Shown piece by piece: positions 1 through 32,584 of a stretch of 33,832 nucleotides of DNA. Source of the stretch: Perkinsus chesapeaki ATCC PRA-425. Lineage: Eukaryota; Protista; Perkinsozoa. The notes beneath the pieces were generated by a model. That model was not told the DNA's origin, ran no database searches, and worked only from the letters and a program-made list of their open reading frames with translations. The translations under genes and the position numbers were made by a program. Every line of letters starts with the position of its first letter. The first letter of the stretch is position 1. The DNA lies in contig JAAPAO010000388.1 in assembly GCA_013115145.1 (NCBI GenBank), positions 1-33,832 of the forward strand. Direction: 5' to 3'.

Positions 1-2438
1 GAAACGGAAATGAAACCGCGCTCGCATGAGCGAAGCGAAGTATCACAGATATACAAACGTCATGCATCTACAGCGCTGATACCGTCAGCCTGAGTCAGCG
101 GCTGACTCACACCGCACATGCCCGAGCTAACCGAGTCATAATAAACGAAACGTCGATAATTTGGTAACCAGACTGAACCGGAGCATCTTCAAGCGGCGGC
201 TTGAGCCAGGCTCCCTGCCTCAATCGAGGCCTGTAACCCGGTATCCAGTTATTAATTGCTGTGATGTTACTCTAACGCGTAAATGAGGAGATGAAGACAG
301 TACGATAATCGTACTACGATAGTGGACTATCTTAGAGGCATGAAATGATCTCTAGATTGAACCTTCAGTAGAGTTCATCAGATGGCAACTGCAGGGCGGC
401 GGCCACTAAACCCAGTTAACGCATCCCCTCACGAGCATGTGTGGAGCAAGTCGCATTAGTCTAGAATCTAGAGCGCTACGTCACGTGTAGACAAGGCACC
501 ATGGAGCCATTATGCGGAGCCACTATAGCGGCTATAGTATAGCCTTATCGTGTCACCTTGTATACAGTGCTCCCTCTCCTGCATTCTGTCTATACACGCA
601 TATTCCTAGCTATGAGTGACGTAGGATAAGCTACAGCTTAAATCACTCCTTAATTACAAGGTTTTTATTTTCTCCATCACCCAACCCCTTGGGACTTTGG
701 TTTGTTACCCTACACATGATACCACTCAGCCTTGATGACTATGCCTGCCCAATCCTTCATTGATTGCTCATCCAAGTCTGTTCCATCGATCGATCTTCAT
801 TTCCCGCAATTCTTTCGCTTCGACCCCTGGTGGATCCCGATCTCCCAGCGAAGGTCAAGGCGCACCGTTAGCTCCGGTGTATGAGACTGTGACTCTCTCC
901 GTGCGATGTGATTGAACTTAGTGGACAGTGAACCTATTGTTTGGAATGACATCAAGTCTCTGCTGCCTTCCCGTCTTTATTGGCATTATCCTTGGCTTGG
1001 GAGCCGAGCAACAACAAGCTGGTCTGCGTGGTCTTCGACCCCCAAGAGGTAAGCTGACTGCTAGGGAATTCAGCGCGCCGAACACCGATCTTGTGAAAAC
1101 TCACAGTGTGCCTCGGTACTGGAATATTCATCCTTGCCTTCCCAACCACATCTACATCCGGGTAATATCTCCAAAGTTGATAATGAGTCTTGGTTACTCC
1201 CAAAAGTCTTTTGGGATGTAATATGATTATAACTTGTAACTTATAACCCTCAGGCACAATATCCGCCACAAAGCCTTGCATCTCCAGAATCTCCTTCCGA
1301 ACAGCTGTTTATAGCATATTTGTGGAAATCTGGACGCTCACAGGCGTCCTCTAGAAAAAATTTGGTTTGGGTTCTTACTGCTTCATATGGTGCCTCGCGG
1401 CGGTCAAGACAACGTTGCTGAGGTCTCCATGCCGTTTGTTCAGAGGTCGTCGTGCACTTTCACAGTGAACTTCCGCTACCATACGACACCTTCCATCCTC
1501 ATCGGGGTTGTGTCGAGTTGCAAGGTAATTATCAACTGTTAATTAAACCCAGGAATCCTGTACCCGAACGCCAGAGCGAAGCGTAACTCCGAGGTGATCG
1601 GAATAAGAATGTCACACATTCAGTCGCCTTGATGACGGGCAACTGTCGAAGGTCCAACGCTTATTGACTGACTAGATGCAATGACACAAGAAGATCACAG
1701 TCGAAGCATGACTCTATGTACTCGTGTGAATCGACATCGGCCATTGGCATTCGCTGTACAACTGTTGCCGCTTCTTTTCCTAGTCCTTCCCAAATGAATT
1801 GTCAACACAGTTCTCCCTCCCTTGGCGATCATGCTGATACCGAGTATTAGTCTGTATAAACTGTCAACTTGTGAGGGTTGAACTTGCCCTACGCCGAACT
1901 TGGACTCTCACGATCATCCAACACTCGGCGAGACCTCCTCCGGGTGGTTGTGGGTTGGTTGAAAATCTTCCGCTTGAACGGCAACGCAGCTGACTTGACC
2001 ATCTGCTCGTACAAAGGATGCCTCGAACCTGAAGTTATTCACGGTGATTCAATATTGGTACCTTGACAAGGTAACCTTGTATTTCCTCAACGCGTTCCTA
2101 TTATAACACAAACTGTCGGGTACGGCCCCCCGACCGTCGACACAACTTGTGTGGCACGGAATGGCAAGAGTGTTATGTGGACACAAGTTGTGTCCCCATA
2201 CACTGTTGACACTGTTGCCATTCCGCTTTACAGTTGTACTGCACAACACTGCGTGTTCTTTCACACACAATCGATGACACATACGGAGACGTGACGCGAG
2301 TCGATGAGCGAGTAAGCCGGTTAGATTCGAGCGACAGTGTTTCCTTGGCTTATCTACCACTCTTAAGTTAACTCCAGACCCCTGTGTCTCATCTGTGGGA
2401 GGATTTCTTCCAAAAGGAGGAGTTTAAGATTTCCTCAC

Positions 2439-3242
2439 ATGAAGTCCACCCTTCCCTTTCTAGAGTGTATCGTTATCGCCATTAATCTTCGGTTAATTTC
2501 GAGCCTATTTGTAAACCGGGACGCTACTGAACTTAAGTACAGGCCTGCCGAGGACGGCGATCTCATGAACGGAGCTCCAATAGCATCGTCTTTGCCGGGG
2601 ACCCGCAAGTTCGTTGCCATCGACAACAGTGTCAGACCAGAATTCGTAGGAGCAGCATGAGCATCCGTCGTGAACGGCGATCCCATTCTCAGAGAGTGGT
2701 TGCATTCGTGGAGTTTGTGGGGGATCAGGAGCCACCAGACTACATCCTACGAAAACTGTCGGTTAATCTACCTACTGCGAGCGATAGTTACGCCCGTCTA
2801 CTCAGATCCGGTGCGGAGAAGCGTAAAAAGTTTTTTAAGATTGCTGAGGTGTTCGTCGCGAAACCCTGGAGGGGGCGGGGGGTTGGGTCCATAATGCTAC
2901 CACAAGCCCTCAAATGGGTAGGCCAACAGTAGACCTTGCCAGGCTGGATTTATCCGCTATCAGATTAAATCGGAGAACTCTGGCACCGCTGCAGTCTACC
3001 TCAGTGTCAAACCAGGAAATAAGAATGCAATCAAATTATATAAGAAAACTAACTTCACTCTTCTGTCTACCGGTAGAGTCGTTGAGGTCACTTCTCCGCT
3101 CGGAACGGACCGTTTCCAAATTGTCATTATACAATGCAACCGTTGCTCATCAGGTTCCCTGCAGACTCAGGTTTTCCTGTACAAGTATTCGGATTCCAAT
3201 GGCACCGAGACACTTTCACAGGGATCGCAAGAGCATGATTGA
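2439..3242 (+). CDS. GNAT-family N-acetyltransferase with hydrophobic, signal-peptide-like N-terminus; join(2439..2630,2693..2917,2964..3242), possible extra intron in last exon
   Basis: Phase-0 GT-AG introns 2631-2692 and 2918-2963 join FVAIDNS|RVVAFVEF and QALKW|IKSEN. GNAT acetyl-CoA motif A 'IAEVFVAKPWRGRGVGSIML' and motif B 'VYLSVKPGNKNAIKLYKKTNF' are present. Stop TGA at 3240-3242. Confidence 0.8.
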
Positions 3243-3474
3243 GGAACGATGTCAGTCTATTTTTGCTCCTGATTTATATTAACACTCGACTGCTCGACTT
3301 GAGTTGCCACAGATACCTTCATCAGGGTTGTGAGATCCACTAGTATAGACCGCACAGTGCTTTGCGAAACGAGCGCTTTTTCACGATGAGAACTTCACTC
3401 TTTGAGTGGCTAGAGGGTCAACTTGATGGAACTCAAAAGACTGATGATTGGAAACCGTTTTACTAATTAAATTG

Positions 3475-5430
3475 TCATGCTGCCGGGACCTCCTCTCGGC
3501 AAATTTCTTCGAGTATCTTTTGCGCGCTGTTCCTACTAGCCGTCGTAATGCCGATGAGGCCAGCTCTGACTGTGTGGTCCAAGGTGTAACGAAGATTTAC
3601 AACTGAAACGGGAGAGAAGATATCTAAGGAGGGCGACTGATTTGACGAACGTTCATCAAGGAGACTAGCGATTTCCTCTTCATCCAGTTCATCCCACAAA
3701 CTTGCACAATTGACCCCTAACAAAGGTGCATTTTGAACCGTTCATCGGAGTTTGGGGTTGGTACTTATATAAAGATATCTGTTCTCTCGATCAGGCTGTG
3801 GCCCGCCAACCTTCGCGGGAACGCTGTGCAGAAGATCTCTACACTCCTTTGGGAACGAGACTTCTAAAAAGGTAGACACGTACTTGGAGACTCAACAGTA
3901 AGAATGAGTTCACCTTCTTCCCCGACCGAACAAAGGTTGATCACAACGGAAGACTCAACGCCTCCTTCTAGTAGTCTTCCGGCACCTTTGAGGGATAAAG
4001 ATAACCAACCTACAGGCTTGGTAGCCGTTTACCAGCTTACCGTGAGCTTTGATTGCCGCCTCTAGCAGAGACCACCCGACTTCTGGGTTAATTCGCCGAG
4101 CCTGCAAACGCGGCAGCATAATGCTATCGGAGACAGTGCCTCACTGGCATTAGGGAGACGAGCCCCAGCAGTTTCCTGCTCTGATCAGTCCACGCTGCCA
4201 AGTTAGGATGGAGCAAGTTACAGTTGACCATCTGGTCTACTGCTTCGCTTGCTTTTGGAGGACTGCAGCTCACCAATGACCTGAGCGGCTTTACCGTAGC
4301 AAACTGAAGTGGACGTACTGAAGGGTGCCGAAGAGCCAAGAGGATAGTATCCTTGTTCTTGCTTGCATTAGCTCCGATAGTGCATTCTTATCCCGGAATG
4401 ACCTGAGGCATTTCGAAGTCGAACGTTCAACCTGGGGCCCGGGTTACCGTGGGAGCTTCAGCCTCACACCGACTGACCCTTCTAGAGATGATACGTCTGA
4501 GAACATATCCCGCAGAGTGGAGTTGGCGAATGAAGCTACGGCAGATGGGAGAATATACGGACCTGAGGGAGCATTCGCTCGGACCAGGTAGCCATTGAGG
4601 AACTTAAGGTACTTCACGAATGAATGAATATTTCCTATCGAGAGCTCCATTCCTCCTGTTCACTAAAGGAATTCTGGGATTCAGAATCGATCCTAGAATC
4701 GCATCTTACGGCCATAAAACGTTTATTCAACGACTCCATTGTATCTCAACACGAGGAACCCTTTACGGTCATCATATATCTACGAGGCCAGGTGACTCCC
4801 TGACGGAGCCAACGTACCAGCCTTTTGCGTAGGTTTTAATACCGATTGAAGGAAGTGAGGAGAGACAAACTACCCCACCGAATGACTTACATCTAATATC
4901 AACTATAATGAAGCGATCTGCGGTCCAGCTGAGGGCATAGGATATCGAATCGAGATCCTGCACAATGGTTTCTGCGCGCGGAGGCGATTTGCCAGCTCGA
5001 CAACTAGCGAAGCACTGAAAGACAAACGCGTGTTACATCGAAGAGTTCGTTGTGATACTTCATCCAGCTTGTGGCTGAGAACCAAATGCTCTGCATAGTG
5101 CGGTGATCGGGTGACCGAAGCGTCCATAGACATACTGTGGGAGACGGCAACCATGTCGACAAGCAATGGCAAGAAGCCTCAGCTAGGAGGACTAATGCTA
5201 AGTCAAAGAAGAGTTAATGTTAGTCTATAATACCGTAACAACGCAGCTTTCATTCTTTCGATCGATATCTTGAGTAACCCTCTCCGGTCCACGACGACCT
5301 CTACGTTACTCTGGACTGAGAGGTACACAATCAACTGGGCTCCTACAATTCCTCCATCAGATTTTCTCCCGCTGATGACGGATTCCCGCGCAGGTATTTC
5401 ACAAGTGTAAACTGCCTTGCATAAACTCAC
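3475..5430 (-). CDS. Probable multi-exon hypothetical protein, exon structure unresolved
   Basis: Series of short minus-strand ORF pieces (e.g. 4772-4963, 4444-4650, 3475-3723) separated by plausible GTRAG...YAG intron-sized stretches. No recognisable domain. Confidence 0.3.
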
Positions 5431-5981
5431 TTCACCCAGTCAAGGGATCCACTCGGTTAAACCAAGTCAGTTGGCTGCTAGTGAAGAGAGGCCTACAAAG
5501 AGTTAACGAATTCTCCAAAGCTCCTGACCATAATGGTTTGTATTATATATCAATATGGTGATTCACGCCATTGATATCTATGGAGATGCACCTGGCTTTC
5601 GCGTAAAACTGTTTCACGCCAGTGTAAAACCGCATGAAGCTTTACATAACACAGGTGCATCTCCTATGTACGTATATTGTATGTAAATCATTCTCTACAT
5701 TTAGTGAACATATATATTACTATCTAGTCTGGTTAGTCACATTATATGAAAAATACCCTCCTTAAGACACAGCTGTAACAACTCAAATGCCTCCAAATAC
5801 CTGTCTGGACACTAGATGGTGATTCTCGTATATAAATGAATCGTAGAAAAATGTTGGTATCACAGAACGCTGTCTGACGCGTTCAAATCGGTTGAGCTCA
5901 GAATGGTAGAAATAGTGAACTATACTGAGAAAGAATTGTCAACCGTTTACGTGATATTTACAGAGCAGCAGTAATGGCAGT

Positions 5982-8686
5982 TTAATCAGAGGACTCGGTC
6001 ATTGAGGAGTACGACTCGACGCTGGTCATGTCTTCTGACTCACCAACAAGTGCCGGACGAGATTTGTTTTTCTCAGCAGCGTCGATAGCAGCTAAAGTGG
6101 TAAGCTCGCCAGCGGACGGCTCACGGTGAAGCAGGGAACCCTCGAGATTGTTCCACTTCTCCGCGAACTTGCCCAAGGCATAGAAAGTGTGATAGAGTTC
6201 GAAGCACTGCTCCGTCCTGAGCGATGCGGGAATGTCGCCTCTTTCAAGCATCGCCGCAACAAAGCGCTCTCTGATATCGAGGAACTTGTCGATGAACTGC
6301 TGAATAGTAACATGGACATCATCCGGCATACCCTCAAGATCATCAACTTCATTCTGAGATGCAAGCCTCTCGGAAATGCGAGTGGCAGAGACCCTCAGCG
6401 CTTCAGAGAACTCGGCGATCTTCTCCCACATTGGGTGCAATATTCTAGCAAACCTGTTGTAGGACTCGGTGTCGCTGAGGATGGGGTGGCTGACCAGAGA
6501 AGTGACCAGAGCAGAGTTGTACAGGTTAATGCTGTAGGTTAAAACAGTCTTGATGGCCTCTTGGTTTCTAAGAACCTCCTTGCTGACCTTCGGCACGGCA
6601 TGGGGAATCTTGCTGTATACGATGACCTCGGGCTTCGCATCGGCGGCGAGGGCATGCATTCTGACGATGTTCTGGAACACGCTTGTGTCCAGTATGTCTT
6701 CCTCGGCGTACATAGCACCGCTCGATTGAGTGACGAACTTGCCGGCAACTGTGTCGGATAAGCCGCTCTTGGTACGAACCATGTCATCCAAGGATTTGCT
6801 AACTTTTTTAGATATCTTCAACATAGTCTCCGCCGACAACTTATTAAGCTTCTTGCAAGCCATATCCGGGAAGAAGGTCGCAGCTATGAAGGACGTGGCC
6901 AAAGTGCCACCGAAGGTGAAGATAAATCTCCACCCGGCCTGCTTGAGCATCACATCATCGCTCAGAGGCGCTTGGACTGATGTGAAACCGACAATATGCC
7001 AAGTCAGGGAGTACATCCAACCAGCGTACCAGATAGGTTCGTATAAGCTGACCAACTTGGCGCTGAACATGAGCAACAGGAGCTCACAGAACCAAGCAGG
7101 TTTATTGTGGGGGTTGATGGCAACGCACGCAAGAGCCATACAAGCGCCGAGGAAGGTACCAATGATACGATAGTTGCCCTTGACAAGAGTGGCACCCGCA
7201 GTCGGCATGAAACAGACAAATGTAGGAATAATAGACCAGAAACCATGGAAGGCTACGTTGTTGCTGTAGGCGGTGCCGATGACCAAAGGAAAGGCTATGA
7301 TGAAGTAACAGACCTGCTGACGGATAGCATACTGATATCTATCCCAGAAGGAGTAGGTGCCCTCATTGTCCAACCAGAAGGGCTTCTTCCACCAATTCAC
7401 CGCGGCCTTCCATATCTTCTTTGAGATGCGGACGGTAGCCATTCCGGCAGTTTCCTGACACAACAAGTCCGTTAAACATCAACTCGACTATTATTGTCAC
7501 TTACTTGACTTTGCAGCTTCTTCTGCTTTGTTTCCTCAATCACCTCTTCCACAAGGGCCTTGCGGAAGTTCTCGGTCAAAATGGCCACATAAAGCATTGT
7601 GCCCACAGCATAATGGAACCTCAGCAGCTCGGCAGCAGAAGGGAACTGAGTGTGACCACGAGCGCACTCTGCGTTGCTCTCAGCAATACACTCAAGCAAG
7701 TATTCTTGGCAATGCTTGGCCTGTTCGCTCAAATCATAGCTGGAGGCTTCGGCCTTGCCATTTGCACAGTCCCGTAGGACCTGGGATACCGTAATGCGCA
7801 GATTACTGAAATCGGCGCAAAACGGTTTCCAAACATACTTGATCATCCCTTCGCTGAACTCGCCCTCGGACAAGCAATCACGTAGTGACGCAAGTTCGCT
7901 TGTTATGGTGAAAGCGGTAGCCTGGACCTTCGGGGGGAGCGGTATATTCACCAGCTTCTCCACAGCTTGCTCAAGATCCTTATGATAGGCCTCAGCGACA
8001 TCCGCACCCATGTTGACGTCAGGGAATCTCCCGCTCTCCTGCTCGAAGACGTTGGCAGCCGCGTCGGCGAAGGCTGAGATTGGCCCCGGCCCAGAGTGCG
8101 GAAGGAGCTTGGTGACCTTCAGTATCGTAACCACGGAACACATAACGACGAAGCCGAAGGTAGCCCAGGTGCCCGCTGCCGCTAGGGCCACATAGACGTT
8201 TCCAGGAGGGTAGAACATGGCTCCCAAAGTGCCAGTAACAAAGATACCCTCTGGCATGATCCAATCTCTGAGTTTGTTATTCATAGGCTTGAATGCCAGT
8301 GACCAAAACCATGCTTCTGGGAGCCAGAGGAGGAACGACCAAACACGGTTCCATTGGCCTGGATCAGCGGCATCAGCGATGACATGGACCAAACATGCGT
8401 TGGCGATACCAATCCACAGACCGAGAACTCCCTTCACAGACATCTTGATGAGCACCTCCCAATTCAGCATAAGCATCGTAGAGCAATACGGCCCGAGGAA
8501 CTGACACGAGAAATCCAATCAATAGCCAAAGAGGGAAGAAAGGCTTACCCCGATAGCAGCATACAGAGGATTCTTCAATGGATTAAAGAAGTACGGGAAA
8601 GAGGCTATTGCCGCACATAGCATGGCAAAGAATGCCGTCCAAAGCTTATAGGCCGACACCGACGCTTGCGGCTTTGGGTAAGGCAT
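5982..8686 (-). CDS. ALMT/FUSC (aromatic acid exporter)-like multipass membrane transporter, ~868 aa; complement(join(5982..7454,7505..8500,8549..8686))
   Basis: ATG at 8686. Phase-0 introns 8501-8548 (gtaagc...gtcag) and 7455-7504 (gtaagt...gtcag) join the two long ORFs. Contains the motif 'IIPTFVCFMPTAGATLVKGNYRIIGTFLG' typical of FUSC_2/ALMT, and two hydrophobic helix clusters each followed by a helical cytoplasmic region. Confidence 0.8.
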
Positions 8687-9021
8687 GCTTTATATTACTT
8701 TACTGAATAACAAAACCTCAACACATTCCCGTTCGCTATAGAACTCTGTTCTCTTGGGGAAATACAACACAAACAGACGGCGGCGGCGGCTTAGCTTCGG
8801 CGCGCAGACGAGCAAGCTAACTGAAATGGAACCTGGCAGCATCGAGCAACTCTAATATTGAAATAGCCATCTCCGAATACACAGTGATACAGGCAGCAAG
8901 AGCGTGTTATTGGGGAGAACAATACAAGGCCCCCAAACGGTCACATTGATAGAAGTCACGGAATAGCTTTAATCACAAAACAGCTTTCGGCATACTAGAA
9001 AATGCGCGCGCTAAAAAATCT

Positions 9022-9092
9022 TCCGACACAGCCGAGTGGTAGAGCACTCGACAAAAGATCAAAGCATCCAGGTTCGATGCCACCATCAGACA
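9022..9092 (+). pseudogene. Degenerate tRNA-like sequence (Phe-like)
   Basis: A-box/D-arm-like 'cagccgagtggtagagca', anticodon-arm-like 'ctcgacaaaagatcaaa' (resembles Phe 'ttagactgaagatctaa'), T-loop 'caggttcgatgcc' and a following T-run, all at tRNA spacing. Stems pair poorly. Confidence 0.45.
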
Positions 9093-16059: not shown

Positions 16060-16561
16060 GGATCTTATTGGAGAAAGTCTTGATGTTTTAGAACTTGTCA
16101 GCAACAACAGCAACTCTGGCTTTAATACCATGCCATGGACGCTTTGCCGTCTTTATACGTGTTGATGGTGGCTCAACGTGTGCTGTTGTGTTGGCAGTAA
16201 GAATCATCAGCTCTTGTGAACCAGTGCTCAGGGTGATAGGCGAGTTGCGGTTCACCGCAATGGGAGACTGAGCAAAGTTTGCTCAGCAAACCCTATCCAC
16301 AAATAGTCCGTTTGTCGATCGATATCAATATGGTCGGTTTGCTGCACGTATGATGTGCGGGCGGGCTAACAGCATCAAGCATCAAGGAAAGATCCGAAAC
16401 TTGATCTCGAGCCTCGGATATAACTCAGAGCCCGAAGTCTTCGGTTTCATCAGCTTTCATAACATCTTCCTATATCTATTTCGCTAGGAAGTCTCTATTG
16501 TGACGCCTCAGTCTTTCGCTTGGCCGTAGCAGTTAGGAGACTCTTCAGTGTGTTTTTATTA

Positions 16562-19500
16562 ATGAAAGCTATTTTCGAACCATCGCTCCGCCTTGTCCCA
16601 GTTGTCGGATCGGACGCAGGCTTTCCGGTGAGGAGAGTCTATTGCATCGGGCGGAATTATGTCGAGCACGCTCTGGAGGTAAGCTCTGATATGGCTATAA
16701 TTACCCCCGTCCAGGATTCGTCCTCGTTTTGCTGCCCTCCTCAGATGAATGCCGATCCTATTCGAGAACCGCCCTTTTACTTCATGAAACCAAGTGACGC
16801 TGTGACGCCGTGTGTTAGTAGACAGGAGAGTGTCACGGAGGTGCCGTATCCTAAATGTGAGCCAGTGTAGGTTTGCCGGATATAATATGCTGTTGAAGCG
16901 CGAGCGTCACTTTTTTGACAACAAAAATTGAATCTTCACGGGATTCTTTTGCCTCTTGCCAATTCGGGTTAATGTCCTTATGTGGCAGTCTGTGGAATTC
17001 TGTGCGTTGACGGCTTCAATTCGAAGCCCAGTGTCTAATACGGTATTATACGGTATTAGTAATACCATTGGCTCGACGGTTAAGCGGACATTGATTACCA
17101 ATGGATTGGCTAATAGAATTCCGTCGTTGAGCTGGAGGGTGGAGAAGCCAGTACACAAGAAATAGTTATAATCTATTTTAAATTGACAACTTCACACAAT
17201 TCGAATGACGTATGGGATTTGCTAGTTCGCCCGGGCGAACCTCACGAGAAAGCGTAAGAGCGATACGGCAATACAAAATTGCTATTATAGCTCACGTAGT
17301 AGCTGGACTCACTAAGAAAGATTGTTCGGATTTTCCGAATCACAAAGAAGTGAAATCCAGTCGTTCTCCTCCGATAGTGATGTAAAGACTTGATATAGTT
17401 GTGAATACAACGTTAGTAGAGCCACTACGTCTCAACCCAAGCTGCGGGCACCAGAATCTGACGTACCTCGCAAACCGAGCGACCCTGTCACGGGGAGCCA
17501 ATTCGTAAGTCTCGAACTCTAGAGAGTCGCTCTTAACGAGATTGAATGATGTTCGAGGCACGGTTCTACGGCCACATGAAAGGTCCAATGTAGCACTGCC
17601 TTGATGCTGGGCGGTGAATACCATATTGACATCACTAGAGTGCTTTCCTAGGTAGATGTAGCGGCCCGCTTGTGGTGGGAGTGCACGCCTTACAAAATCG
17701 AGTCTTCTACCTTCGATAGTGACATAGAGTGAATCGTCAGTCGTGAAAGTTAGAGTTGTCAAGTCACCAGCTTTAATATTCAAACGCAGGTTTGCCAGCA
17801 GGAATCTGTACCACTCGTTGAGAGCTGTAAGACCGAGGTAATACACATTCGAACGTCCCGGGCTAAGGGGGGAGGTGAGGCGCCTCGCTGATGCGGCACC
17901 ATTGTCCGGGTCCGGGATGTCGATGAGTAAATAGACCATCCTGCTTGTGTAGTCGGGAATAATGAAATCGAGAGGGTACAGTATCTCGTGCCCGGAACTA
18001 TTGGCGCCGACGACGGAACCGCTGTAAAAACCTGGTGGCTGGGCCAAGGCTTTGAGCAACATTTGGGCAGCTACGACTGACCAAGTATATGAGAATATCA
18101 TGTTTTATTATGAAACCAAAAGCAATCAACCACTTAAATAATTGCCTTTCGCGGTATTTCAGCACTTCCGCCCGGGAACCCGGCTCTTGCGGGACAACAT
18201 TGGCTGGACTACTGGGACGAAGTGTATTGGAAATTCACTCTTACTGAGCATTACCCAATTTCTGACTTTTAGTACAAGGCTTGTAGTACGATGGATGATA
18301 GCAGTGACTGCTCAGCATTCACTTGAAAGCCCACTGGGCTTAGCCCAGGCTCATCGAACTCTCTCCTATCAGACAACGTCACGGTGGCGCGCCGTTTTGT
18401 GACGATGTCGCCTCTGCCGGGAGAAGTGCAGTGTCAAGACTGAAGGGATCTTGGTAAAGGGTCTCGTAAATCGGCTAGAATTAGATGTTCAGACCATATA
18501 TGACATATCACGTACACCATCAATGACCGCTGGCCACTGACCAGTTCGAAAACTGCATACCAAATTTTCCTATTCTCGTAGTGTGACGCGAAAGTCGCGT
18601 CGGGGCTGTCCCATTGTGACATCCGATGTCACACATCGTGGTGGTGAAGCGCATCGTTACAAAGTTGGTAACCTTTCTGATCCTGCTTGGCTCAGCAACA
18701 GTTCCACATTACCGAAATGTATCATCCGCATTGCGGTCCGCAATTTGCGGATTCCTCAACTGAATTAGCCCAATATGGTTGCAAGCCAGCGTATTAGGCT
18801 ATATCAGCTGTGCCACGGATATCATATCAGTGATATCGATATGATATCACTCAATAAGGCATCTAATACATGCCTTGTATTAGATGATTCTCGTTCTGAT
18901 AGCTCTCGCGAGGTACAAATGATGTTCATCACGAGGCAGAGCTCGTTGTATGTCTCGGTCCTGGCGCCAACAGCAGAATCTGTGAGGAGCTTAGCGATAC
19001 GGAGTTGCTTGCAAAGTGCATCGTTGGTTATGCTCTCGGAATTGACCTTACCAAGAGGGATGTGCAAGCGAAGGTGAGGAATAGGAGTTCCCAGCCTGCT
19101 GTATACTGTATCACTGAGTGTTTCATGCTTCCGACGAGTCATCAATGTAACCTCAGGCAAAGTCGATGCGGCGGCCGTGGGAAGAGTCCAAGGCATTCGA
19201 CCATTCTGCTCTTATAGGCCCGATCTACCCAATGGTCGGGGCCCTACCTTGGGATAGAGCTCTTCTCTGCCTCAAGTTAGTTCAGCCACAATGAGGCCTC
19301 GTGAATATAGCGTCTCGATATTAGGACAAACGGAGAAGTGAGACAGCAGTCTACCCTCGATAAGATGATATGGCCGGTAGTTGACATCATTAAGTACATT
19401 GCAGAAAGAAACGAAATTGCACCCGGTGATATGGTGAGTCCTCCGCTCGTTTATTCCACAAATATCTTCTACGCATCGCTCATTTCAGATATACACGGGC

Positions 19501-19632: not shown

Positions 19633-19987
19633 TCTCTTTCCTTTTCATTCAGTGTGTTTGTTGTCCGATAAATGCCATTACCGATAACATAAATTAGGCT
19701 CTCCCAGCCTGGAAAAGTTCCAGTGGAACGGAGTCCCAGGAACTCCCAGGACCGAGTTGTTTCCGGATTTTTTTGTGCGACGGATTATAAAACGCTACGC
19801 TCAGCATAGCTGCTATACTACTGTATAGCAAGTCATTAACTTGTATGCTATACAACTTTTTCCATTATCCACGGCCTGCAAGGGAACCTCTTCAAGAGAC
19901 TAGTATATAGTACAAACGGTACCATCATATCGGTCCCGTTTTGGGAGTCCTGACATGTACAGGGTATCTAAAATGCCAGGGGCGTAA

Positions 19988-20285
19988 ATTGCGCCGCGCA
20001 ATGGTAATGAATTATACACTATGAATAACGAGTCGTTATTAACGACACTGTCGTTACGACAGTGAGTCACTGGCAGCGACTATTAAATGAATATTATCCA
20101 TCAAGTGGCAAAGAAAATATAGGCTATTATAGCCTGGCTATAGTATAACCGCTATACTGTATAATCACCACTATCGAGAGTCTCAATCTAAGACTCATGT
20201 CACAGTGTGACACTGTCACTTGTAAGACTCATGTGACCGTCACAGTGACAGTCACATGAGTCTTACAAGTCACTTGTAACAAGTG
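19988..20285. repeat. Cluster of overlapping odd-centred palindromes plus a 20-bp inverted repeat
   Basis: Examples: aataacga-g-tcgttatt (20024-20040), cactgtcgt-t-acgacagtg (20046-20064), and acttgtaagactcatgtgac / gtcacatgagtcttacaagt (20218-20237 / 20251-20270). Confidence 0.9.
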
Positions 20286-21323
20286 CTATCGTCTCTATGA
20301 CTGCTGACTATCTCTCGCATTATGAATTTTGCATTATATCAAACGAAGTTTAGCGCGTGAAAAACGGCATCCACAAGGTGATCAACAGCAGCGTTTCAGC
20401 AACTATTAGTAGCTGAAACGCTTATCAGTAACGGTTATATCCACTGGATATTAGTCTAAGATCTACGCGATCTTCCCTCTCTACTGACTGAGAGCTTGCA
20501 GGCCTAGAAAACTTTTCTGATAACCTGTTGGACGAACTTCGTTCAACGAAGCAGATGTCCACAAACATGACTTTTCTCCCATTCGAGTCCATAGTCGTAA
20601 CCAGCCGATCGCACAGCCTGTAACCACAGAAGAACTCGACGATTTCATTGAAATCCAGACCCTCGGTTACCACAGGGGGCTTCTCAGTCAAGTCGTGCCC
20701 TCCACGTGGGGCCCTGGGCAACGCCTTGGTGATAACGCCTTGGCGGCTAACTAGTCTGCCCCGGGCAAACTGCCCCTCAGATCACCACCTAGTCGTTATG
20801 ACGCCAAGTAAGTCTATAGTCGTCAGAGTGGTTGCCGAAGATATACGATTCATCGTCCGCCTTGAGAATTGGGTCATGGGAGGAGATTGTCGGGATACCA
20901 ATGCCATTGGTATGATACTATCATACGATTAAAATCCGGGCTCTCCGCGACTGAGGGGTCGCCTGTCGGACCAAGTGGGGGTGAAGTTCTTCCAGTCAAA
21001 AAAAAACTCGCTGTGAACACCAGTGTCGGTACGACACCATTTTCAGACGATTTCCAAGGATGTCTGGCAAAGGCAACGCATTGAAGTACCTCGGCTATAG
21101 TTCTCGCAAACGGGCCCGACTCGGGCCGCCCGGGCCTTTCCGCTCAGGGAATTCGGGTTCAGGACTTCATTCGGGACCTCAACAGCTTCGGTTTACGGAA
21201 TCAACTTACCGCCGGTAACTTACCGGAACTTCACACAGAAAGTCTGGGGTCGGGTGAGTTCATCTCTGTTGAACAACTCCCACCGGGTTGGATACCCAAG
21301 ATCTGGGTGCCAGTTGTACCCTG

Positions 21324-21506
21324 GCAAGACTCGTCCGAGTCCCGAATAGAACCTCTCAGGACCATTAGTCAACCCCAACCCAGTTAGTCCCCGGGGCATC
21401 CGGCAAGTAGTATCCCGCCTATTCGGAGCTCGCAAGACTCGTCCGAGCCCGGGTAGAACCTTTCAGGACCATTAGTCAACCCCAACCTAGTTAGTCCCCG
21501 GGGCAT
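21324..21506. repeat. Imperfect direct repeat, 2 x ~75 bp
   Basis: gcaagactcgtccgag...gaccattagtcaaccccaacc(c/t)agttagtccccggggcat at 21324-21399 and 21432-21506. Confidence 0.9.
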
Positions 21507-21919
21507 TTCTAGGAAAAGGCACAAGAATTTCTTGTCAAGAAACCGCCTGGGCGACCGAGATTGGTTACTTGACATTTCACGACATACCTTGAATTACTTG
21601 AGTGTTAGCTGTAACCCTTCGCTCCGCCCTTGTGTTTGCGTGCACGGTGTTCTGAGCATTAGCTATATTTCATATTCCGTCTCACAAGCTCCTGCTGACC
21701 TTGTGTTCTGCGTACGAGTAAGAATACTGCAACATTAGCCAAATCTCGAAATCTTGCATTCTCACTATTCTTTACTAGATTATACTAGGACCTAGTAACT
21801 AGGTTATAGCTGACATGGCAGAATATCTGAATCTTATCCTTGTTCTGGATACACCACTCGACAGCAGGCTGCTGATAGCAGCTGTACTGGTATCTTGCGC
21901 TCTACTAATACGGTATTAG

Positions 21920-21980
21920 TCCAAATTTTGGACAACTGTTAGGGTATTAGTAATACCCTAACAGTTGTCCAAAATTTGGA
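21920..21980. repeat. Perfect 61-bp palindrome (30-bp arms, 1-nt centre)
   Basis: tccaaattttggacaactgttagggtatta-g-taataccctaacagttgtccaaaatttgga. Confidence 0.95.
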
Positions 21981-22491
21981 TAACTGTTGGAGTAACCAAT
22001 TCGGATTCCAAATTGGTTAACACAAGTCATATGTAATTTCCAGCGCAACGAGAGCAATGAAAAACTTTCATGCAAATGCAAGAGACTTGATTCCGAATCT
22101 TGCGCTCTTGTGTTTACCTCTCCATGATTCTAAAAACACAGAAATGCCCAATGGCCGTCACCCAATCACATACAACCTTTATAAATTGGTGTAACGCTTT
22201 TAGTATTCAATTGTAATTCCCATTGCTCAGTGGCTTGAGACTGAGCACTACAGAACAATCGCATAGAGTGCCCTAGAACGCCCATCTAAATGCCATTTAA
22301 CATGTCTCATTTACTATGGCAAGCAGCTCAGCACTGTGTTAGTCTCTTCACTGGCAATTATCATTCAGTTATCGAATATAATTCCTGTCAGCTAACCTGT
22401 CTTTGAGTATACATTCGAGTCACCTTGTTATTACGCTCGAGAAAAAAGCGAAATTGCTCGGGTATGTGATGATTTTCCCTCAGTGTTTGAT

Positions 22492-23881
22492 ATGCTCTCT
22501 AATTCCCTAGCGGCTAACGGCGGCACTACATCTACTCGGCTGCCCAGGATTCCCCAGGCAATTGAGGGAAGGCCTCCGAAGCAGTCGCCTCACTTCAAGT
22601 TCGTTCTTGCGGTCATCGGCGTCATTGCCTTCATATACTGCGGTTTTGTTTTCGGTCTCTGGTGGCCGGCTCTTGGCGGCCGTTGGTCTCGGCTAATGAT
22701 GCTCATTTTCAACACCTTCGTCTGCCTTATGCTCTTGGCTTTCTTCCAGAGCTGCACTACCGATCCTGGTGGGGTCCCTCAATACTGGGGGTTCCACATA
22801 GGTGATGATGCTAAGAGGCGAAGGTACTGTAAAATGTGTCATGTTTGGAAGCCGGAAAGATGCCATCATTGCTCGGCATGTAATCGATGTAATCTTAATA
22901 TGGACCATCACTGCCCATGGCTCAACAACTGTGTTGGTTTCTACAACAGGAAGTTCTTCATCCAACTTCTTGTTTATGTCTACATTTGCATCGCTCTTGT
23001 CCTCCTATTTGGATTCCCTCGGGTAATAGCCATCCTCGACGAGCGTCTCAATCACGAGAGTGGTTTGATTCTTATGCACCCTCGTAGCTGTCTCGGTCTG
23101 TTCTCCTACGGCCTGTCGATACTACTGGCGATTTCTCTGTTTAATTTCGTTAAGTTTCATCTTGGGCTGGTTGCTGATAACTTCACGACGATTGAGAACT
23201 TCGATAGAGAGCCTGGAGTGAGGTCTAAGTATGACATTGGAAGGCGGGCTAATGTCGAGGAGGTAGTAGGGGGATATACTGGGGAAGGGTCGTTCAAAGG
23301 TACCGTACGCAATAGATGAGGATATGTTGGTATGTAGGAGGTCTTAAGCTTTTCTTTGATAGCGTTAAAAATGCAAAGTGCGGTAGTGGATGTGGTTAGA
23401 CTGTGCCGAATGGTGACTGGAAACGCAAGAGTTTTTAACGAAACCTCTCTCAATTCGTCGATCTTTGTCGCACTGTTATATGATAAAATAATTGCGGAAA
23501 GGAAATCGACTTTTTTCCACTGGCCAAATGTAGAGCCGGAGATCCATGGACGACCGGTGTGTCGTGTTAAGGAAGTCTTAGGGGAATTTCACAAGTTTCC
23601 GATCGTATTCGAATCGAGTTACTGTAGCGGAAGTGGTAGTAATGTTGCAGGTAATGGGCCCGACACCTTGGCTTTGGTGGCTGCCGTTCCACACTAGGTT
23701 GAGCGAGCCTGTTGGTGATGGCGTTAATTGGCGGATTCGGACATCTGATGGAGGAATCGGTATGAGCGCTACGAGCTCGATAAATGCAGGAAGCAAGAGT
23801 ACGACAGTAGCTCATCCGGTGACATCAGTGTCATCGGCAACCGATGCGGGGAGGGCTCCGGATTGGGCGATGCGGGAATGA
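22492..23881 (+). CDS. DHHC-type protein S-palmitoyltransferase; join(22492..23262,23651..23881)
   Basis: 'RYCKMCHVWKPERCHHCSACNRCNLNMDHHCPWLNNCVGFYNRKFF', TTxE-like 'TTIENF', and 'YDIGRRANVEE|VMGPTPWLWWLPF...GDG'. Phase-0 intron 23263-23650. Start codon tentative. Confidence 0.9.
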
Positions 23882-24141
23882 GGAAAGAATGCAGTAACAT
23901 TACAAGCTTTTCGATCAGCGAGTTTCTTAGCGGAGCGAAGCTGAGTTGCCTAGGCGGGGTTTTGAACGAGGACAATCGGAATTCGTAAATAGTTGCATTG
24001 GACAAAGCGAGGGAGGGCTTGTTGCTCAGTAGGACGCGTCCATGGCTTGCATGGTCTTAATATAATGAATAATGATATAGTACTTTATCTCTTCTATTGA
24101 GGTATTGATGTGAATGCTATTAGCAGCTGTTTAAAACTGTA

Positions 24142-27100
24142 ATGTCAAGCTTTCGGTCATCAACAACGGTGTTGAACAACAATGACTGTGATGTCTCGGC
24201 GGCTTCAACCAGTATAGGGGGAACACCCCCGAGAGATGCCATAGATGATCTTGAAATTGGCGCGTCCGAAGGGGAGCGGAGTCGGAATCAACAGGGCCAT
24301 AGCGGTAATAAGGGAAACGCGAAATGATTGTTACGAGCTTTGGTGTAGATGATAGGAGACGATCTAACAGGAGAACGGTAAGACGTAATTTGCTGAGGAG
24401 GATAAATGATTACACCAAATGTATATTTATGATGTTCTGTGGATTATTAGCCCTCACTTTATTAGTCTTAACAGGTAGGGGAGGGCGGGGAGAGAGGGAG
24501 ATCGGTGATCTAGTGCACGCAGTGACGCATATATCGTAGTCTATTTGATGTTCCTTAGAACTGTAACCAACTCAAACGCGCAAAGCAATAAACCAGATAC
24601 TTGTCCTTTGAGGCCTGCGTTCTAGAAACCGAGTAGAGTCGATAGCCAGAACGGAGGGGATCGATGAGACGAAACAATCACTGGGTTAGCATATATCGTA
24701 GTCTATTTGTTGAATATACCTAGGCAGATGTATGCCGTACCCACAGATGTCGGCGAAAAGTACTCAATATGGAATATGAAAATTCTATGGAATTCCGGCC
24801 AACTTTTTACGCATTTTAAAATGTATATAGTGTCGATTGGTAAAGTAGAATAATGAGGAACAGTGACGGATATGCCACCACTGTAGCCATAAAGCCGTGG
24901 GAGCTTAGAGGGTAAATATGATTCAATTCATAGTGGTCGGTTGAATATGGGCCTATTGGGTCCCAGTGAGCTATGCTCCAGAGGCGTCCCTGAGGTATTC
25001 CTACTAAGGATAAAGTATATTTTAATATCATTTAGTGCAGCTAATTATCTCATTATAACTTTACATTATTGTCATTTGAAGTCTATTACATTTCAGGTGT
25101 TACTGTATGGGCTATATTTGTTGTTGAGAAGAGCGATATGGTCTGTGACCGTCCGTTAAGAACGTAGTATGAGATGGACAGCGGAGCGAAGCGTTTTTTG
25201 TATGCAGGTTTTTGCTAGTTTATTTCGTCGGTGTCATATACGGCATATTAAAGTCCATCATCACTCGTGTCTTACTGTGCTATAATCCTAATACTAACCC
25301 CGAGAAGCCATTGAGGGTTAGAATACACGACGCTCTATTCACTGGTAATAAAGGGAGGGGGAGCTCAGTTCTGGCAGTTACGGCCCAGTGTCAGCTAAGG
25401 AATTCTCTAAAAAGAGTTGGGTGGCTCTGTCGGGTGAAGTGGCTGGGCGGCGCAATCGTTCTGGGCTATAAAAATAAAATTGGTGACAAGTACTGTACCG
25501 GAATACTACTGGTTCTGGTCATACTCCGGAGGCCAGCTGTGAGAGAATTTGGGTATTTAGAGGTACTACCTATATAATAGGTAGATGGTATTAGTAGGAA
25601 ATGCGTGGTGTTAATTGATAAAATAATGACGGGGTTATTGATCTGTCGGGCGAGAGGAGCTGCGGCCTAAGGGAAGAATATGCATTAAAGGAATGGTAGA
25701 GGTTTGATGAGCATAGTTGCTAAGAGCTACGAGGCTCCGTCGGGACATTTTATCTGCGCGCAGGGACTGACGAGGAGATCTGAATTTTGGGTTCAAAAAA
25801 TTGGCCTTGGCAGCCTTTGAGGTGTGATATGCCTTCTAATCATTTTAATAAGAAGTTAAATGAAGCTAACTAATCGGTCGTGGGCCTTTGAATACACCCT
25901 TTCATAGATGACCTTCCAGCCGACTGGATGACCATTTCTTCATTGCCTTTCAGCTTTCTGTTTTGCCTGGCCTATAATCGGTGTGGTGTGGCTTGCCTCC
26001 TCTGAAACATGCAGTACAACAGCGCCTACGCTCTTTGCAGTGTCAACGACAGTAAGGGAGGTGTCGTCGAGTGGAGGGTTGTTATTGTTGATGGTGGTGG
26101 TTTTGGTAGATTGTAGTATTGTTGATAGTGGCGTGGGTACTCACGTTATTGGGTCCACCGATAATGATAGGGATATTGATGTTGGCGATAAGAAGAGGCC
26201 ATATTAGAGTGGCAAAGGAGAGACAGGTTAAGGTTGATAGGGTAAGTGGCCCGAGGTGGGTATGTGGGTATTCATAAGGATAATACCAATAGTGGAGTAA
26301 TTTATGTATTTGAATGATATGAAACTCAACTGGATAGAATGAAGGGGTCCGAACATGTGTGATACCCATTCTGTATCCAACTCAAATAGGCTCGGGAAAA
26401 GGCTGCGAAACTTAGGGGCATTCCAGTCACGGTTTTCCCGCGCTGAACCGTGTCTCTACCTTACTAACGAAGACAAGGGCGACAGGTTTAGTGTAAACTC
26501 CGTAGATGATGGCGAATATATGATGCAAGTGTTGTTTTTTCGGGTAAGCTGTAGCGTGGCGGTATCTGTGTTGTTCAGGTCTTATCAGCATTACGTATTG
26601 TATCAGCCGATGATGCCGCGAAGGTGGCTGGCGAGTGCAGTGTTTGTTTGACGGAGTAAGAATGGGATGTTATGGTGTAACGGCAAAGCGCTGAGTTTTT
26701 CATTCATGAAGTTGTGGGTTCGAATCTATACTATAGCATTTTATTGTTTTCAGCTTTGCCGACGTTTCCAGTCGAGCCGAGGTTATCAGGGAGACTCCTT
26801 GTCAGCACTACTTCCATCATAAGTGTTTGGAGAACTGGGCAAAAGTAGGCGACGCGAGTTCGATCCCTGCTCCCTGCATTTTCTTTCCATAGAAAATCTC
26901 TTGTCTAATGTTTTATCTTGTATTACCTGATTTTATAAAGTTATTCATTGCTTCGTGTTACTTTACAGTAAAGTCTTCATTTTATAGGGTTATCCATTAT
27001 TCTTTGTTGCTTTATTTTATGAGGTTATTTATTAATTTTCATTACTTCCCAAGCAATACTATAGTAGCGATATATCCATAGTTAAATATCCTTGTGAAAA

Positions 27101-29774: not shown

Positions 29775-30852
29775 CAACTTGAAAAATACTTATAAAATTC
29801 CTATATCATTGATATAGGAATTATAATTGATATAATATCAATATTGAATTTGTTCGCAGCATGCCATAGCTGTCCATATTCATTATGAATGCCTAGTAAT
29901 ATGCCTTCGTGCGTACGGCGTGTATACGCCATGGTGTAACCTATGATATGGAGTGTCCTATTAGGACATGCTTAGTATTACTAAGTTAGTAAGCTTGTAT
30001 CACGCGCCATATAATGTCCAACTGCGGTCATGTTGATCATCCCGATGGATATATGGGTTCCGGGAGCGCGATCCTCCTTATCGTACCGCTCCGAAATAGT
30101 CGTGTCATGATGCCAGTCCATCTCGAGTGACCAACGCGCGTCTGTCGGCGCGAATGTCGAGTCAAGAATGCTCGAACATGGCTGGTAGGCTTTTGCCAGC
30201 CGTGTTTCGCCATTATTTGGCTCAGTAGCTCCATCGGAACGGCGGTCACCAACCGACGTAGGGGGCGAAGAGAAATGAGGAAAAGAAGTTCTTATCCTAG
30301 ATTTGTCCCCATTGGCGGTTGCAGGAATGTTGCTGTCGTGTAACACACGATAGAAGACCCTTGAGAAGTCTCACCATTAGTGACGAGTTGCCAGTAATGG
30401 CGAGAGCTTGTCTAGGGAAGCGGTCGTTACTAGCGACAGCTTCTGGGGCAACAAAGACTCTTAGGTTTCAACCAAGTTGTTAAGGCGGAATTGTTGGTAT
30501 AGGAGGGCCTCCTGCAAGGCTGAGCGTTGAGCGGCTGAACGGCGAGCCCTGAGCCGACTCGCGGCGCTGCACGAAACGCTGCTCTAACTGGGCAACAATC
30601 TACAATCGGTTATCGTGTACCCAAAAAGGTACTGGTGAATCCACTTTGTTGATAAAATTGGTATCTCATAACTTCATGAACAAGTTACGTCAGTTCTCAT
30701 ACGTGAGTTTCATCCGCGAGAATTTGCCACTGGCCAATTGCCAGTGTAATTTCGCTGGAAGTCCCGGTCTTCCGAGTCGGAAGTTCCGACTCTACTCATG
30801 AATCAATGCCCATTTGTGTATTGTGTAAGGGGTTCATGATGAAATCATCATG

Positions 30853-30901
30853 ACTCAAATCTATCAGATGATGAACGGTTCATCATCTGATAGATTTGAG
30901 T
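30853..30901. repeat. Perfect 49-bp palindrome (24-bp arms, 1-nt centre)
   Basis: actcaaatctatcagatgatgaac-g-gttcatcatctgatagatttgagt. Confidence 0.95.
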
Positions 30902-31082
30902 TCACGTAGATGCTCAAACTTTGAGCCGACTTTAAGTCGACTTTAAGTCGACTACGTATGTGTCTCTGATTGCAGAAGTTGCTCATCCTTCCGACCACAC
31001 GTGCTGGGCTTAAAGAAATCCGCACGAACCATAATATGGGATATGGGCCCTGTATTCTTATTTACTGCTACGGTTACCTTAG

Positions 31083-31390
31083 ATAACTGTAGCGATCGAA
31101 GTCGACGACGATATCCGCGAGGATGATGTCCGAGTTAATGTCAGACCTACCCATCTGACAGTCAGAATCACGGGCGCCGATGGTTTCGACGGTAAGTCTG
31201 ATAGCGTAGTCTCGATATTGGGGTATTGGCAGGCGAACTGAATGGCAAAGTAGATCCGCGAAAGTCTACTTGGGAAGTTGATGACGGCGAGGTTAAGATT
31301 ACTTTACAAAAGGCTGCCATCAGCGACCCTGAGGATGAGGACAGAACATGGTTCGACTGGTGGGGAGACCTCTGGGCTAAGAAAATGTAA
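31083..31390 (+). CDS. 3' exons of a CS (p23/NudC-like) domain protein; join(<31083..31191,31233..31390)
   Basis: 'ITVAIEVDDDIREDDVRVNVRPTHLTVRITGADGFD|GELNGKVDPRKSTWEVDDGEVKITLQKA...WWGDLW' matches the NudC-type CS-domain pattern. 41-nt intron 31192-31232. 5' exons not found. Confidence 0.7.
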
Positions 31391-32584
31391 GTTGGTTGAA
31401 TGTTTTTAGTGGAATAACGGGTTGGCTTTCGCTTTCGAATTCCAGTATCAGCTCTCACGAGTAGCCGGTCACTCATTGTAAATTATGATCTATAATCCGC
31501 CATGCTGTTAGAGTTGAATAATTGAACCCCGGCATATCTGCGTTATCCCTCAGCAATACCCTCTACTATATCACTTACACTTTTCCTGTTTTCTTCAGTA
31601 TTTCGGTCATTAGTATGTGTTGTCTGTGGCTCGTATCGAGTCCCGAAGCTGTGTCGTCTAACGTGAGTTTTTATTGGTTTGCGCTGACCGGATATTTCAT
31701 ACCTGTGTCGGAGAATTGAATTACGCGCAGAAGATTCGTTTGGGTTGGCGCGCGCCCGCGTATATGTGAAAGTATGCTATCGGATATTTGAGTGATAGTC
31801 GGAACTTTTGAGATGCACGAATTGAACGGATATCAGTATGACTGTACTCGTCGGATATTGCAGATGACCGAATCGGATAAATGCATGCTGGTTGTAAATA
31901 AAGGTGACGCAATATTTGCTTGCTACCCCTCGGAAATACCAATGCGTATATCGAAAACATGACCGGGAAAAGCTGCAGACTCCCTATAAATATCTAAGAA
32001 ATTCCATAAACTAATGTTCAGACTCGGGTTGGCTATTTTTCTTAGAGTCGCCAGCGAGATGGAATGCTTTTGAGCATCCACACTTCATCGTTTAAAACTG
32101 TCCTCGTATGATTCTCATTGTCAGGTAACTTTCAGCATTCCCTCAACATTCCTTGGTTACTGTCCAGCAATACGTCTACTAGCGCTCATACACTTAACTT
32201 CACGTCTGATTTGAGTTGTTAGATAGGCAAGAGTATAAGGGGAACATCAGTGTTATTCGCGAATTCGAAGTGAAGACAAGCTCCGATAGCACGTTCAAGT
32301 TGAACGGTTCAACCGTAGGTGATGAATAGTGTGGGCCTCACAGTGTGAGGCATTTAACGCTGCTCTGGAATAGCGGCTTATGCAACATTTGGTCAGTATG
32401 GGAGGTACGAAGCAAGGAGCATTACCGGGCAAGGAGCATTCGGGTTAGGCTGGGAGCTTCCATGATTGTTAATAGTTTGGCCGGCTTATCGAGCAATGCG
32501 TAGCTGGCTACAAGCTAATGTCTACTGAGTTCAACTTTAACGTGATTTTATCGTTCTTTTGCGCTCATCTCTCCGCAAGCTTAC

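Follow-up and report, generated by a model that had tools for sequence, protein, structure and literature searches.

Results

Organization of the locus

The window analyzed here is an entire contig of P. chesapeaki, 33.8 kb in length. The genus Perkinsus is parasitic on oysters and clams. No tRNA and no Rfam match was found in the window and its genes are nuclear, on which grounds an organelle or RNA-gene origin of this DNA was rejected. A search for homologs of the open reading frame at 17340-18101 found none.

Perfect inverted repeats with a single central base and arms of at least 7 nt number 59 in the window, whereas 40 dinucleotide shuffles averaged 2.1 and never exceeded 5. The initial annotation had estimated about 40 such odd-centered palindromes; the excess over chance that it reported is real and every coordinate that it gave as an example was verified, but the count is 59. 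When palindromes in the window were sorted by spacer length, a shuffled-control check that the same annotation had proposed, spacers of 1, 3 and 5 were enriched (59, 27 and 18 palindromes), and spacers of 0, 2 and 4 (1, 3 and 2 palindromes) stood at the chance level of the shuffles, about two being expected for spacer 0. Enrichment at odd spacers only indicates that the axis of symmetry sits on a base. The commonest arm length is 7 nt (38 of the 59 palindromes), and the arm sequences are unrelated to each other.

Palindromes are absent from positions 2,196-16,267 of the window, and they are confined to non-coding DNA. Over the span covered by synteny with P. olseni, 0 of 45 palindrome centers fall in sequence conserved at the protein level, where 15.3 would be expected (P ~7e-9), which bears out the earlier remark that none lay in exons. 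The sole apparent exception, the structure at 33575-33596, proved to be intronic. The palindrome at 33046-33060 was considered as conserved coding sequence, the same 15-mer being present in P. olseni (L003/L004), and was rejected because the genes are not homologous.

A 22-nt scar of fixed geometry

Most of the palindromes are parts of a single 22-nt structure, N1-7 + revcomp(N1-8) + N2-8, equivalent to an 8-mer plus 14 nt; we refer to it as a scar (Table 1). The window holds 15 perfect copies, about 1e-4 being expected, and 20 copies with one or two mismatches (6 at 13/14 pairs and 14 at 12/14). In a scan of the window over k, the 15 perfect copies of the triple structure were specific to k = 8; none was present at k = 6, 7 or 9-13, k = 5 gave 3 against 0.5 expected, and the even-centered form of the structure was absent. 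At 17 cores set by 12 other constraints, 34 center bases were compared with their outer bases: 32 are the complement, 2 are identical and none is any other base. A generalized pair test found 25 palindrome pairs in the window but none in 10 shuffles. Each long palindrome (arms of 13-30 nt) is matched by a partner half that shares its 8-mer. Short hAT-type joints in the window, with L+R = 1-7, are barely above chance; L+R = 8 occurs 15 times.

The overlapping chains of palindromes described in the initial annotation do exist, but they resolve into the single 22-nt structure, their apparent iteration representing separate events on overlapping targets. Collapsing scars to their 8-mers exposed no older perfect scars hidden beneath them, the overlapping pair excepted. 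In the target logo, T2/A7 are the sole enriched positions (27/70 against a background of 27%), an effect that is weak (p ~0.02) and leans toward the hAT consensus nTnnnnAn. The distribution of scars is strongly clustered: as many as three targets fall in a stretch of 14 nt, and two unrelated loci share CTAATACC as the target 8-mer. TSD+TIR scans of the window at two stringencies found no resident transposons above the level of shuffles, and Pfam scans of 18 window ORFs, of which 10 lie in scar-rich DNA, detected no transposase ORFs or relics.

Table 1. Scars and composite palindromic structures in the window.
Feature	8-mer	Position	Strand	Details
Perfect 22-nt scar	CTATAGCC	523..544	.	14/14 pairs
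Perfect 22-nt scar	TACCTTGT	2059..2080	.	
Perfect 22-nt scar	GAGCAAAC	16270..16291	.	
Canonical scar	CTAATACC	17035..17066	.	with 10-nt tandem duplication
Perfect 22-nt scar		18327..18348	.	
Perfect 22-nt scar		18730..18751	.	
Non-canonical pair	CATATCAC	18823..18850	.	13 nt between centers
Three overlapping scars	ATAACGAC, AACGACAG, ACAGTGAC	20025..20080	.	2 perfect, 1 at 12/14; targets span 14 nt of ancestral DNA
Perfect scar, then overlapping 12/14 scar		20121..20157	.	
Composite	TGTGACAG	20206..20285	.	right hairpin unrolled ~29 nt; imperfect long palindrome 20215-20273; perfect scar 20264-20285
Perfect 22-nt scar		21521..21542	.	
Perfect 22-nt scar		21783..21804	.	
Composite	CTAATACC	21905..21980	.	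N1-7, left inverted tract 8 nt, right hairpin unrolled 30 nt; perfect 61-nt palindrome 21920-21980
Composite	TATATCAA	29796..29842	.	palindrome with 13-nt arms and partner palindrome; 25 nt between centers
Perfect 22-nt scar		29971..29992	.	
Perfect 22-nt scar		30769..30790	.	
Composite	GGTTCATC	30831..30901	.	short left half, filler 9 nt, right hairpin unrolled 24 nt; palindrome 30853-30901
Perfect 22-nt scar		32292..32313	.	
Perfect 22-nt scar		33575..33596	.	intron of last gene
Densest spacer		19633..22428	.	25 palindromes, 14 scars (5 per kb); P. olseni counterpart only 237 bp

Allelic variation in P. chesapeaki and P. olseni

An independent 2022 sample from a separate study (contig depth ~100-fold) matches positions 16,200-21,353 except for a single SNP and a 54-nt deletion that removes bases 20215-20268. 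An attempt to derive the long allele from the short one through a single hairpin event failed. Since the short allele keeps the left half-palindrome, the missing bases were lost secondarily, by deletion between direct repeats of 11 nt. Scars are seen to decay through deletion, as in this sample, and through mutation, as in the mismatched copies.

Scars are nearly absent from the compact syntenic locus of P. olseni. Three sites there differ between alleles in having either a scar or an 8-mer, two of them with an exact 14-nt gap: the scar at L005:8069 corresponds to the plain 8-mer TATGAAAA in L002 and L006, the scar at L006:9708 corresponds to CATGGTAG in L005, and at L006:10338-10390 a long-palindrome form is found where L005 has a single GTTGATAT. 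The direction of the allelic change is not fixed, as the N2-7 direct repeats could also lose precisely 14 nt by slippage. L002 has GTTCATAT at the last of these sites, with an unexplained 22-nt insertion before it.

The same P. olseni locus carries, at L005:4661-4943, a 267-bp element whose termini read TAGAG; it has subterminal repeats, TIRs that match at 12 of 14 positions and an 8-bp duplication, CCCGTGAA, and the site is empty in both L002 and L006. The consensus of hAT termini is YARNG. An element with hAT-type ends was thus recently mobile in the genus, in P. olseni rather than P. chesapeaki. In a small sample comprising the window, two read sets and three P. olseni alleles, no site combined an occupied allele with a scarred one.

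Discussion

The palindromes are most probably donor-site repair scars of hAT-type cut-and-paste transposons, which would have made 8-bp target duplications and left flank hairpins with a one-base offset. Arguing for this origin are the observed geometry, the fixed k = 8, the center-base rule, the partner halves, the scar and 8-mer alleles, the restriction to non-coding DNA and the presence of a mobile element with an 8-bp duplication; from these we infer an element formerly at each scar, and the steps of hairpin opening and annealing. The element would have lain between two copies of the 8-mer N1-8, and its excision would have sealed each flank as a hairpin, the lone unpaired tip base being the position that adjoined the element. 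In Perkinsus the hairpins would then be opened far from the tip, at about 6 to 30 nt or more, to give long 3' tails, the left reading c8..c1 and the right N1..N8. Because of the 8-bp duplication, the left and right tails would be complementary across exactly 8 nt. Annealing of the tails, trimming of flaps and filling of gaps would invariably yield the 22-nt product N1-7 + revcomp(N1-8) + N2-8. Tails joined without annealing would instead give a long odd-centered palindrome together with a half-palindrome partner built on that 8-mer, and in some cases filler. That short hAT footprints are barely above chance implies a repair outcome unlike that of every described host.

The closest parallel is Ac/Ds. 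In plants, Saccharomyces cerevisiae and Candida albicans, Ac/Ds makes an 8-bp duplication, the flank hairpin is cut one nucleotide into the flank, and microhomology is used (PMC5873905, PMC1978519); its footprints include palindromes centered on the complement of the flanking base that adjoined the element (PMC5873905), whose arms reach 20 nt in yeast (PMC5873905, PMC1978519). The Perkinsus scars are likewise palindromic insertions that follow the same complement-centered rule on an 8-bp unit. However, the described Ac/Ds footprints are heterogeneous and mostly short P-nucleotide joints, forms that are near chance in Perkinsus, where ~35 of ~40 recognizable events ended in one complete product, an inversion of the full 8-mer that adds 14 nt, arms reach 30 nt, and scars have accumulated to as many as 5 per kb of spacer. 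In genome-wide surveys of rice, the footprints of DNA transposons also serve as a record of past excision, but they are complex, seldom "perfect" and recognized only through the alignment of two genomes (PMC4423477), whereas the Perkinsus scars are recognizable in a single sequence. V(D)J recombination, Transib and Muta1 share a flank hairpin made by a transposase and opened by host factors, but their hairpins are symmetric and result in even-centered palindromes. A test for a RAG/Transib-type footprint in the window was negative, with one palindrome of spacer 0 against ~2 expected and no even-centered triples (the Transib duplication is 5 bp). The hAT/RAG hairpin analogy drawn in the initial annotation is supported in its hAT half and not in its RAG/P-nucleotide half, since perfect hairpins produce even-centered palindromes and these stand at chance.

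The tight clustering of scars and the reuse of CTAATACC are not predicted by random insertion and count against a transposon origin. So do the near-chance level of short hAT footprints, the lack of a resident element or transposase ORF in the window and of any site both occupied and scarred among the alleles compared, the weak target preference and the unfixed direction of the allelic differences. Template switching or snap-back synthesis of the Pol theta type, acting in replication or end joining independently of any transposon to invert local sequence, would account for templated inverted insertions with filler, for filler copied from nearby sequence at some composite sites and for chains of events at adjacent positions. 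It is nevertheless improbable, as snap-back synthesis would give variable lengths and multi-base loops rather than a unit of exactly 8, an axis always on a base, two center bases that both obey the complement rule and long palindromes that share an 8-mer with a partner half. Equally improbable is an origin in excision by a different superfamily whose duplications are similar (Mutator-like, Merlin or P). Muta1 makes flank hairpins and 8-9-bp duplications (PMC5499845), and Merlin, whose duplications are also 8-9 bp, is represented by ORFs in P. marinus (PMC8101967). Yet scars of k = 9 and even-centered scars are both absent, the Muta1 hairpin is symmetric (43+43 nt) and Muta1 excision is mostly precise (PMC5499845), the mobile P. 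olseni element begins with TAGAG and not with the 5'-GG conserved at Merlin ends, and no Merlin TIRs or TSDs were found in P. marinus.

A nuclease that forms hairpins and is host-controlled or domesticated, or a cruciform signal under selection, would not involve selfish-element traffic and would be in keeping with the extreme local clustering and reuse of micro-sites, with the one 8-mer targeted at two loci and with a window from which no element remains. We consider it similarly improbable, because the scar product needs two copies of the 8-mer and hence an earlier insertion, the arms have unrelated sequences, and scars vary between alleles, decay, and are nearly missing from the compact P. 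olseni locus. The undescribed fold-back system or cruciform signal favored by the initial annotation is likewise at odds with a unit fixed at 8, the Ac/Ds complement rule, presence or absence between alleles, and decay by mutation and deletion. A peculiarity of the host, by which the scars would record more than selfish-element traffic, is unlikely, although a little less so. It would be either a domesticated hAT-type nuclease that recuts the same intergenic micro-sites time and again, or a pathway of hairpin processing specific to Perkinsus, with a deterministic product that would make excision a major directional source of new non-coding DNA and palindromes. The fold-back artefact of library preparation or assembly that was raised at the outset is scarcely credible. 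Chimeric reads can yield short palindromes, but 5 kb is reproduced in the independent contig at ~100-fold depth, so the palindromes there are not artefactual; three P. olseni assemblies show the same structures with allele-specific presence, and palindromes are excluded from exons.

If the scars are those of hAT-type excision, the mechanism is of a known kind, and what appears to be undescribed is a scar that is near-deterministic, dense and self-identifying; our literature searches found no description of such scars in Perkinsus. Excision footprints are usually too varied to be recognized without a second genome. One fixed 22-nt product for each imprecise hAT excision would allow the history, rate and site preference of excision to be read from a single assembly. 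The scars also point to an unusual repair of hairpin-capped breaks, through opening far from the tip and annealing via the duplicated target, which would be testable in P. marinus since this species is transfectable. With 14 nt added per scar, and up to 5 scars per kb in lineage-specific spacers and introns, scar formation is a measurable source both of growth in non-coding DNA and of short sequences able to form hairpins.

Odd-centred palindromes and the 22-nt unit

The palindromes of the window are real and highly significant: counted directly, perfect inverted repeats with arms of at least 7 nt and one central base number 59, whereas 40 dinucleotide shuffles average 2.1 and never exceed 5. 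The initial annotation had seen about 40, and the excess over random sequence that it claimed is borne out. It had also named equal enrichment across spacer lengths as a refuting outcome; instead, the excess lies only at odd spacers (59, 27 and 18 at spacers 1, 3 and 5), whereas even spacers 0, 2 and 4 stand at chance level in the window (1, 3 and 2), which places the symmetry axis on a base. The spacer-3 and spacer-5 palindromes are spacer-1 objects with mismatches beside the centre, and the dominant class (38/59) has arms of exactly 7 nt.

Palindrome centres 7 nt apart are strongly over-represented and define a 22-mer (the scar), N1-7 + revcomp(N1-8) + N2-8, where N1-8 is an 8-mer target. 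There are 15 perfect copies, 6 at 13/14 pairs and 14 at 12/14, for chance expectations of about 1e-4, 0.005 and 0.1, respectively, and 45 of the 59 palindromes fall in units scoring at least 11/14. The chaining noted earlier, in which a right arm becomes the next left arm, is explained by this single structure. Generalized to any k, the structure is populated only at k = 8: in the window, k = 6, 7 and 9-13 give none, and even-centred versions are absent. At 17 sites, each defined by 12 other constraints and having two centres, 32/34 centre bases complement the outer bases N8 and N1, and the remaining 2/34 are identical to them.

When the comparison was widened to two odd palindromes at any distance, with outer arms that are direct copies and centre bases obeying this rule, the window held 25 pairs and ten shuffles held 0. 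For each of the longer palindromes (arms 13, 24 and 30 nt, plus 29 nt in an imperfect one) there is a partner half that shares its 8-mer (TATATCAA, GGTTCATC, CTAATACC, TGTGACAG), with filler of 3-9 nt in two cases; these long palindromes read as hairpins that unrolled by 13 to 30 nt and were joined with no annealing step. At 17035-17066 the scar is canonical and has since acquired a 10-nt tandem duplication.

Origin of the palindromes

The best explanation, and a probable one, is that these are scars of hAT-type excision whose repair was unusually deterministic. An artefact had been raised as an alternative, but a second study (2022) yielded contigs identical to window 16,200-21,353 except for one SNP and one 54-nt deletion, and the palindromes are not an artefact. 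The deletion sits inside the 29-nt-arm palindrome, bounded by 11-nt direct repeats; the left half-palindrome is kept in the short allele, which therefore derives from the long allele, and derivation of the long from the short allele in one step failed. The RAG-type hairpin analogue proposed initially is not supported: RAG, Transib and Muta1 (hairpin of 43+43 nt; PMC5499845) would leave even-centred palindromes from symmetric hairpins, and none occur here above chance. The hAT hairpin footprint proposed alongside it agrees with both the centre-base rule, which has been published for Ac/Ds (hAT) footprints (PMC5873905), and the restriction to k = 8. The target logo of 35 scars is enriched at T2/A7 only, a weak effect in the hAT direction. 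Neither an element nor a transposase was found in the window, and no site both occupied and scarred was seen.

With L and R as the bases from the tip at which the left and right flank hairpins would open, joint classes L+R = 1 to 7 are near chance and the complete class (L+R = 8) has 15 members, which indicates hairpins opened far from the tip. Such opening would leave a left 3' tail reading c8..c1 (complements of N8..N1) and a right one reading N1..N8, the two being complementary over precisely the 8 nt of the duplication; their annealing, with flap trimming and fill-in, would then yield a uniform 22-nt product. Whether L+R equals 8, or exceeds it and annealing follows, every product would be the identical 22-mer, and we infer that the annealing, trimming and fill-in step accounts for product uniformity.

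The scar mechanism belongs to a known kind; in the literature we found neither a complete 22-nt product that dominates nor such density in a genome. The present analysis contributes tests of parity and of k length, the centre-base rule, a test for partner halves of long palindromes, allelic before-and-after pairs and, from P. olseni, a hAT-type element that is polymorphic there.

Alleles and a mobile element in P. olseni

Three P. olseni assemblies (L002, L005 and L006) cover the syntenic locus, and the scar process is active there too, at lower density than in P. chesapeaki.

Scars, alleles and other located features (window coordinates unless prefixed by a P. olseni sequence)
Feature	Position	Comparison or description
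22-mer scar	L005:8069	TATGAAAA in L002 and L006; difference of exactly 14 nt
22-mer scar	L006:9708	CATGGTAG in L005; exactly 14 nt difference
Long-palindrome form	L006:10338-10390	plain 8-mer: single GTTGATAT in L005; GTTCATAT in L002
MITE-like element	L005:4661-4943	267 bp; TAGAG... termini; 12/14 terminal inverted repeat positions match
Scar in intron	33575-33596	intron roughly 130 nt, roughly 40 nt in P. olseni
22-nt insertion	L002:11515-11536	flanking direct repeat, about 10 nt; immediately upstream of GTTGATAT site; outside scar model
389-nt indel between P. olseni alleles	L005:909-1297	no clear target-site duplication or terminal inverted repeat; outside scar model
Identical 15-nt odd palindrome	33046-33060; L003:11299-11313; L004:10594-10608	non-homologous genes
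Tandem repeats in DUF1907 gene span	10467-10656; 13035-13313	38 nt; 36-39 nt

Formally, the allelic change could have run either way, since exactly 14 nt could also be lost by slippage between the N2-7 repeats. In the L005 scar one substitution is common to the middle and right copies, as expected if a mismatch in annealed tails was repaired. In the long form the left hairpin is unrolled about 31 nt, with the upstream flank copied in reverse.

The MITE-like element has many subterminal GTACGG/CCGTAC repeats and is flanked by a perfect 8-bp duplication, CCCGTGAA; the site is empty, with one 8-mer, in L002 and L006. The hAT terminal consensus is (T/C)A(A/G)NG, which the TAGAG termini fit. These termini do not fit Merlin's 5'-GG ends (PMC8101967).

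Distribution of the scars

The absence of palindromes from recognised exons, reported initially, extends to sequence conserved with P. olseni at the protein level, which holds 0/45 in the synteny-covered span (15.3 expected, P about 7e-9). Scars are densest, at up to 5 per kb, in the spacer between FAA-hydrolase and DHHC, whose length is 2.8 kb in P. chesapeaki vs 237 bp in P. olseni, and no palindromes lie at 2.2-16.3 kb of the window. A lineage-specific stretch of about 2 kb, carrying 3.4 scars per kb, appears to split the FAA-hydrolase gene; blocks 16553-16864 and 18912-19614 are both conserved with P. olseni FAA-hydrolase exons, and the annotation covers 18775-19632 only. Within the splitting DNA an orphan ORF is annotated (17340-18101, minus strand), with no homolog among 5.8 billion proteins.

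Three targets lie within 14 nt at 20025-20080, and CTAATACC underlies scars with unrelated flanks at both 17035-17066 and 21905-21980 (chance about 2% for about 40 sites). Such tight clustering and re-use are unexplained by random insertion; both could result from re-insertion nearby or from hot micro-sites.

Genes and other features of the contig

The window, the full contig JAAPAO010000388.1 of Perkinsus chesapeaki, is nuclear DNA (G+C 46.7%) with genes for ALMT/FUSC, DUF1907, CDC14-like, FAA-hydrolase, DHHC and RING/CS proteins and two unnamed ones; it contains no tRNA and no Rfam match. The RING/CS model has 659 aa over 7.2 kb, vs 1212 aa in the P. olseni model, and GC skew is strongly positive (about +0.2) at 23000-27000, across the 5' part of its span. 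Segment 21322-21912, where read depth is 4-14x that of the flanks and loose ends are numerous, is multi-copy, with a core at about 21637-21734 and no match in Rfam; a 108-nt tandem duplication (21321-21399 + 21429-21506) adjoins it.
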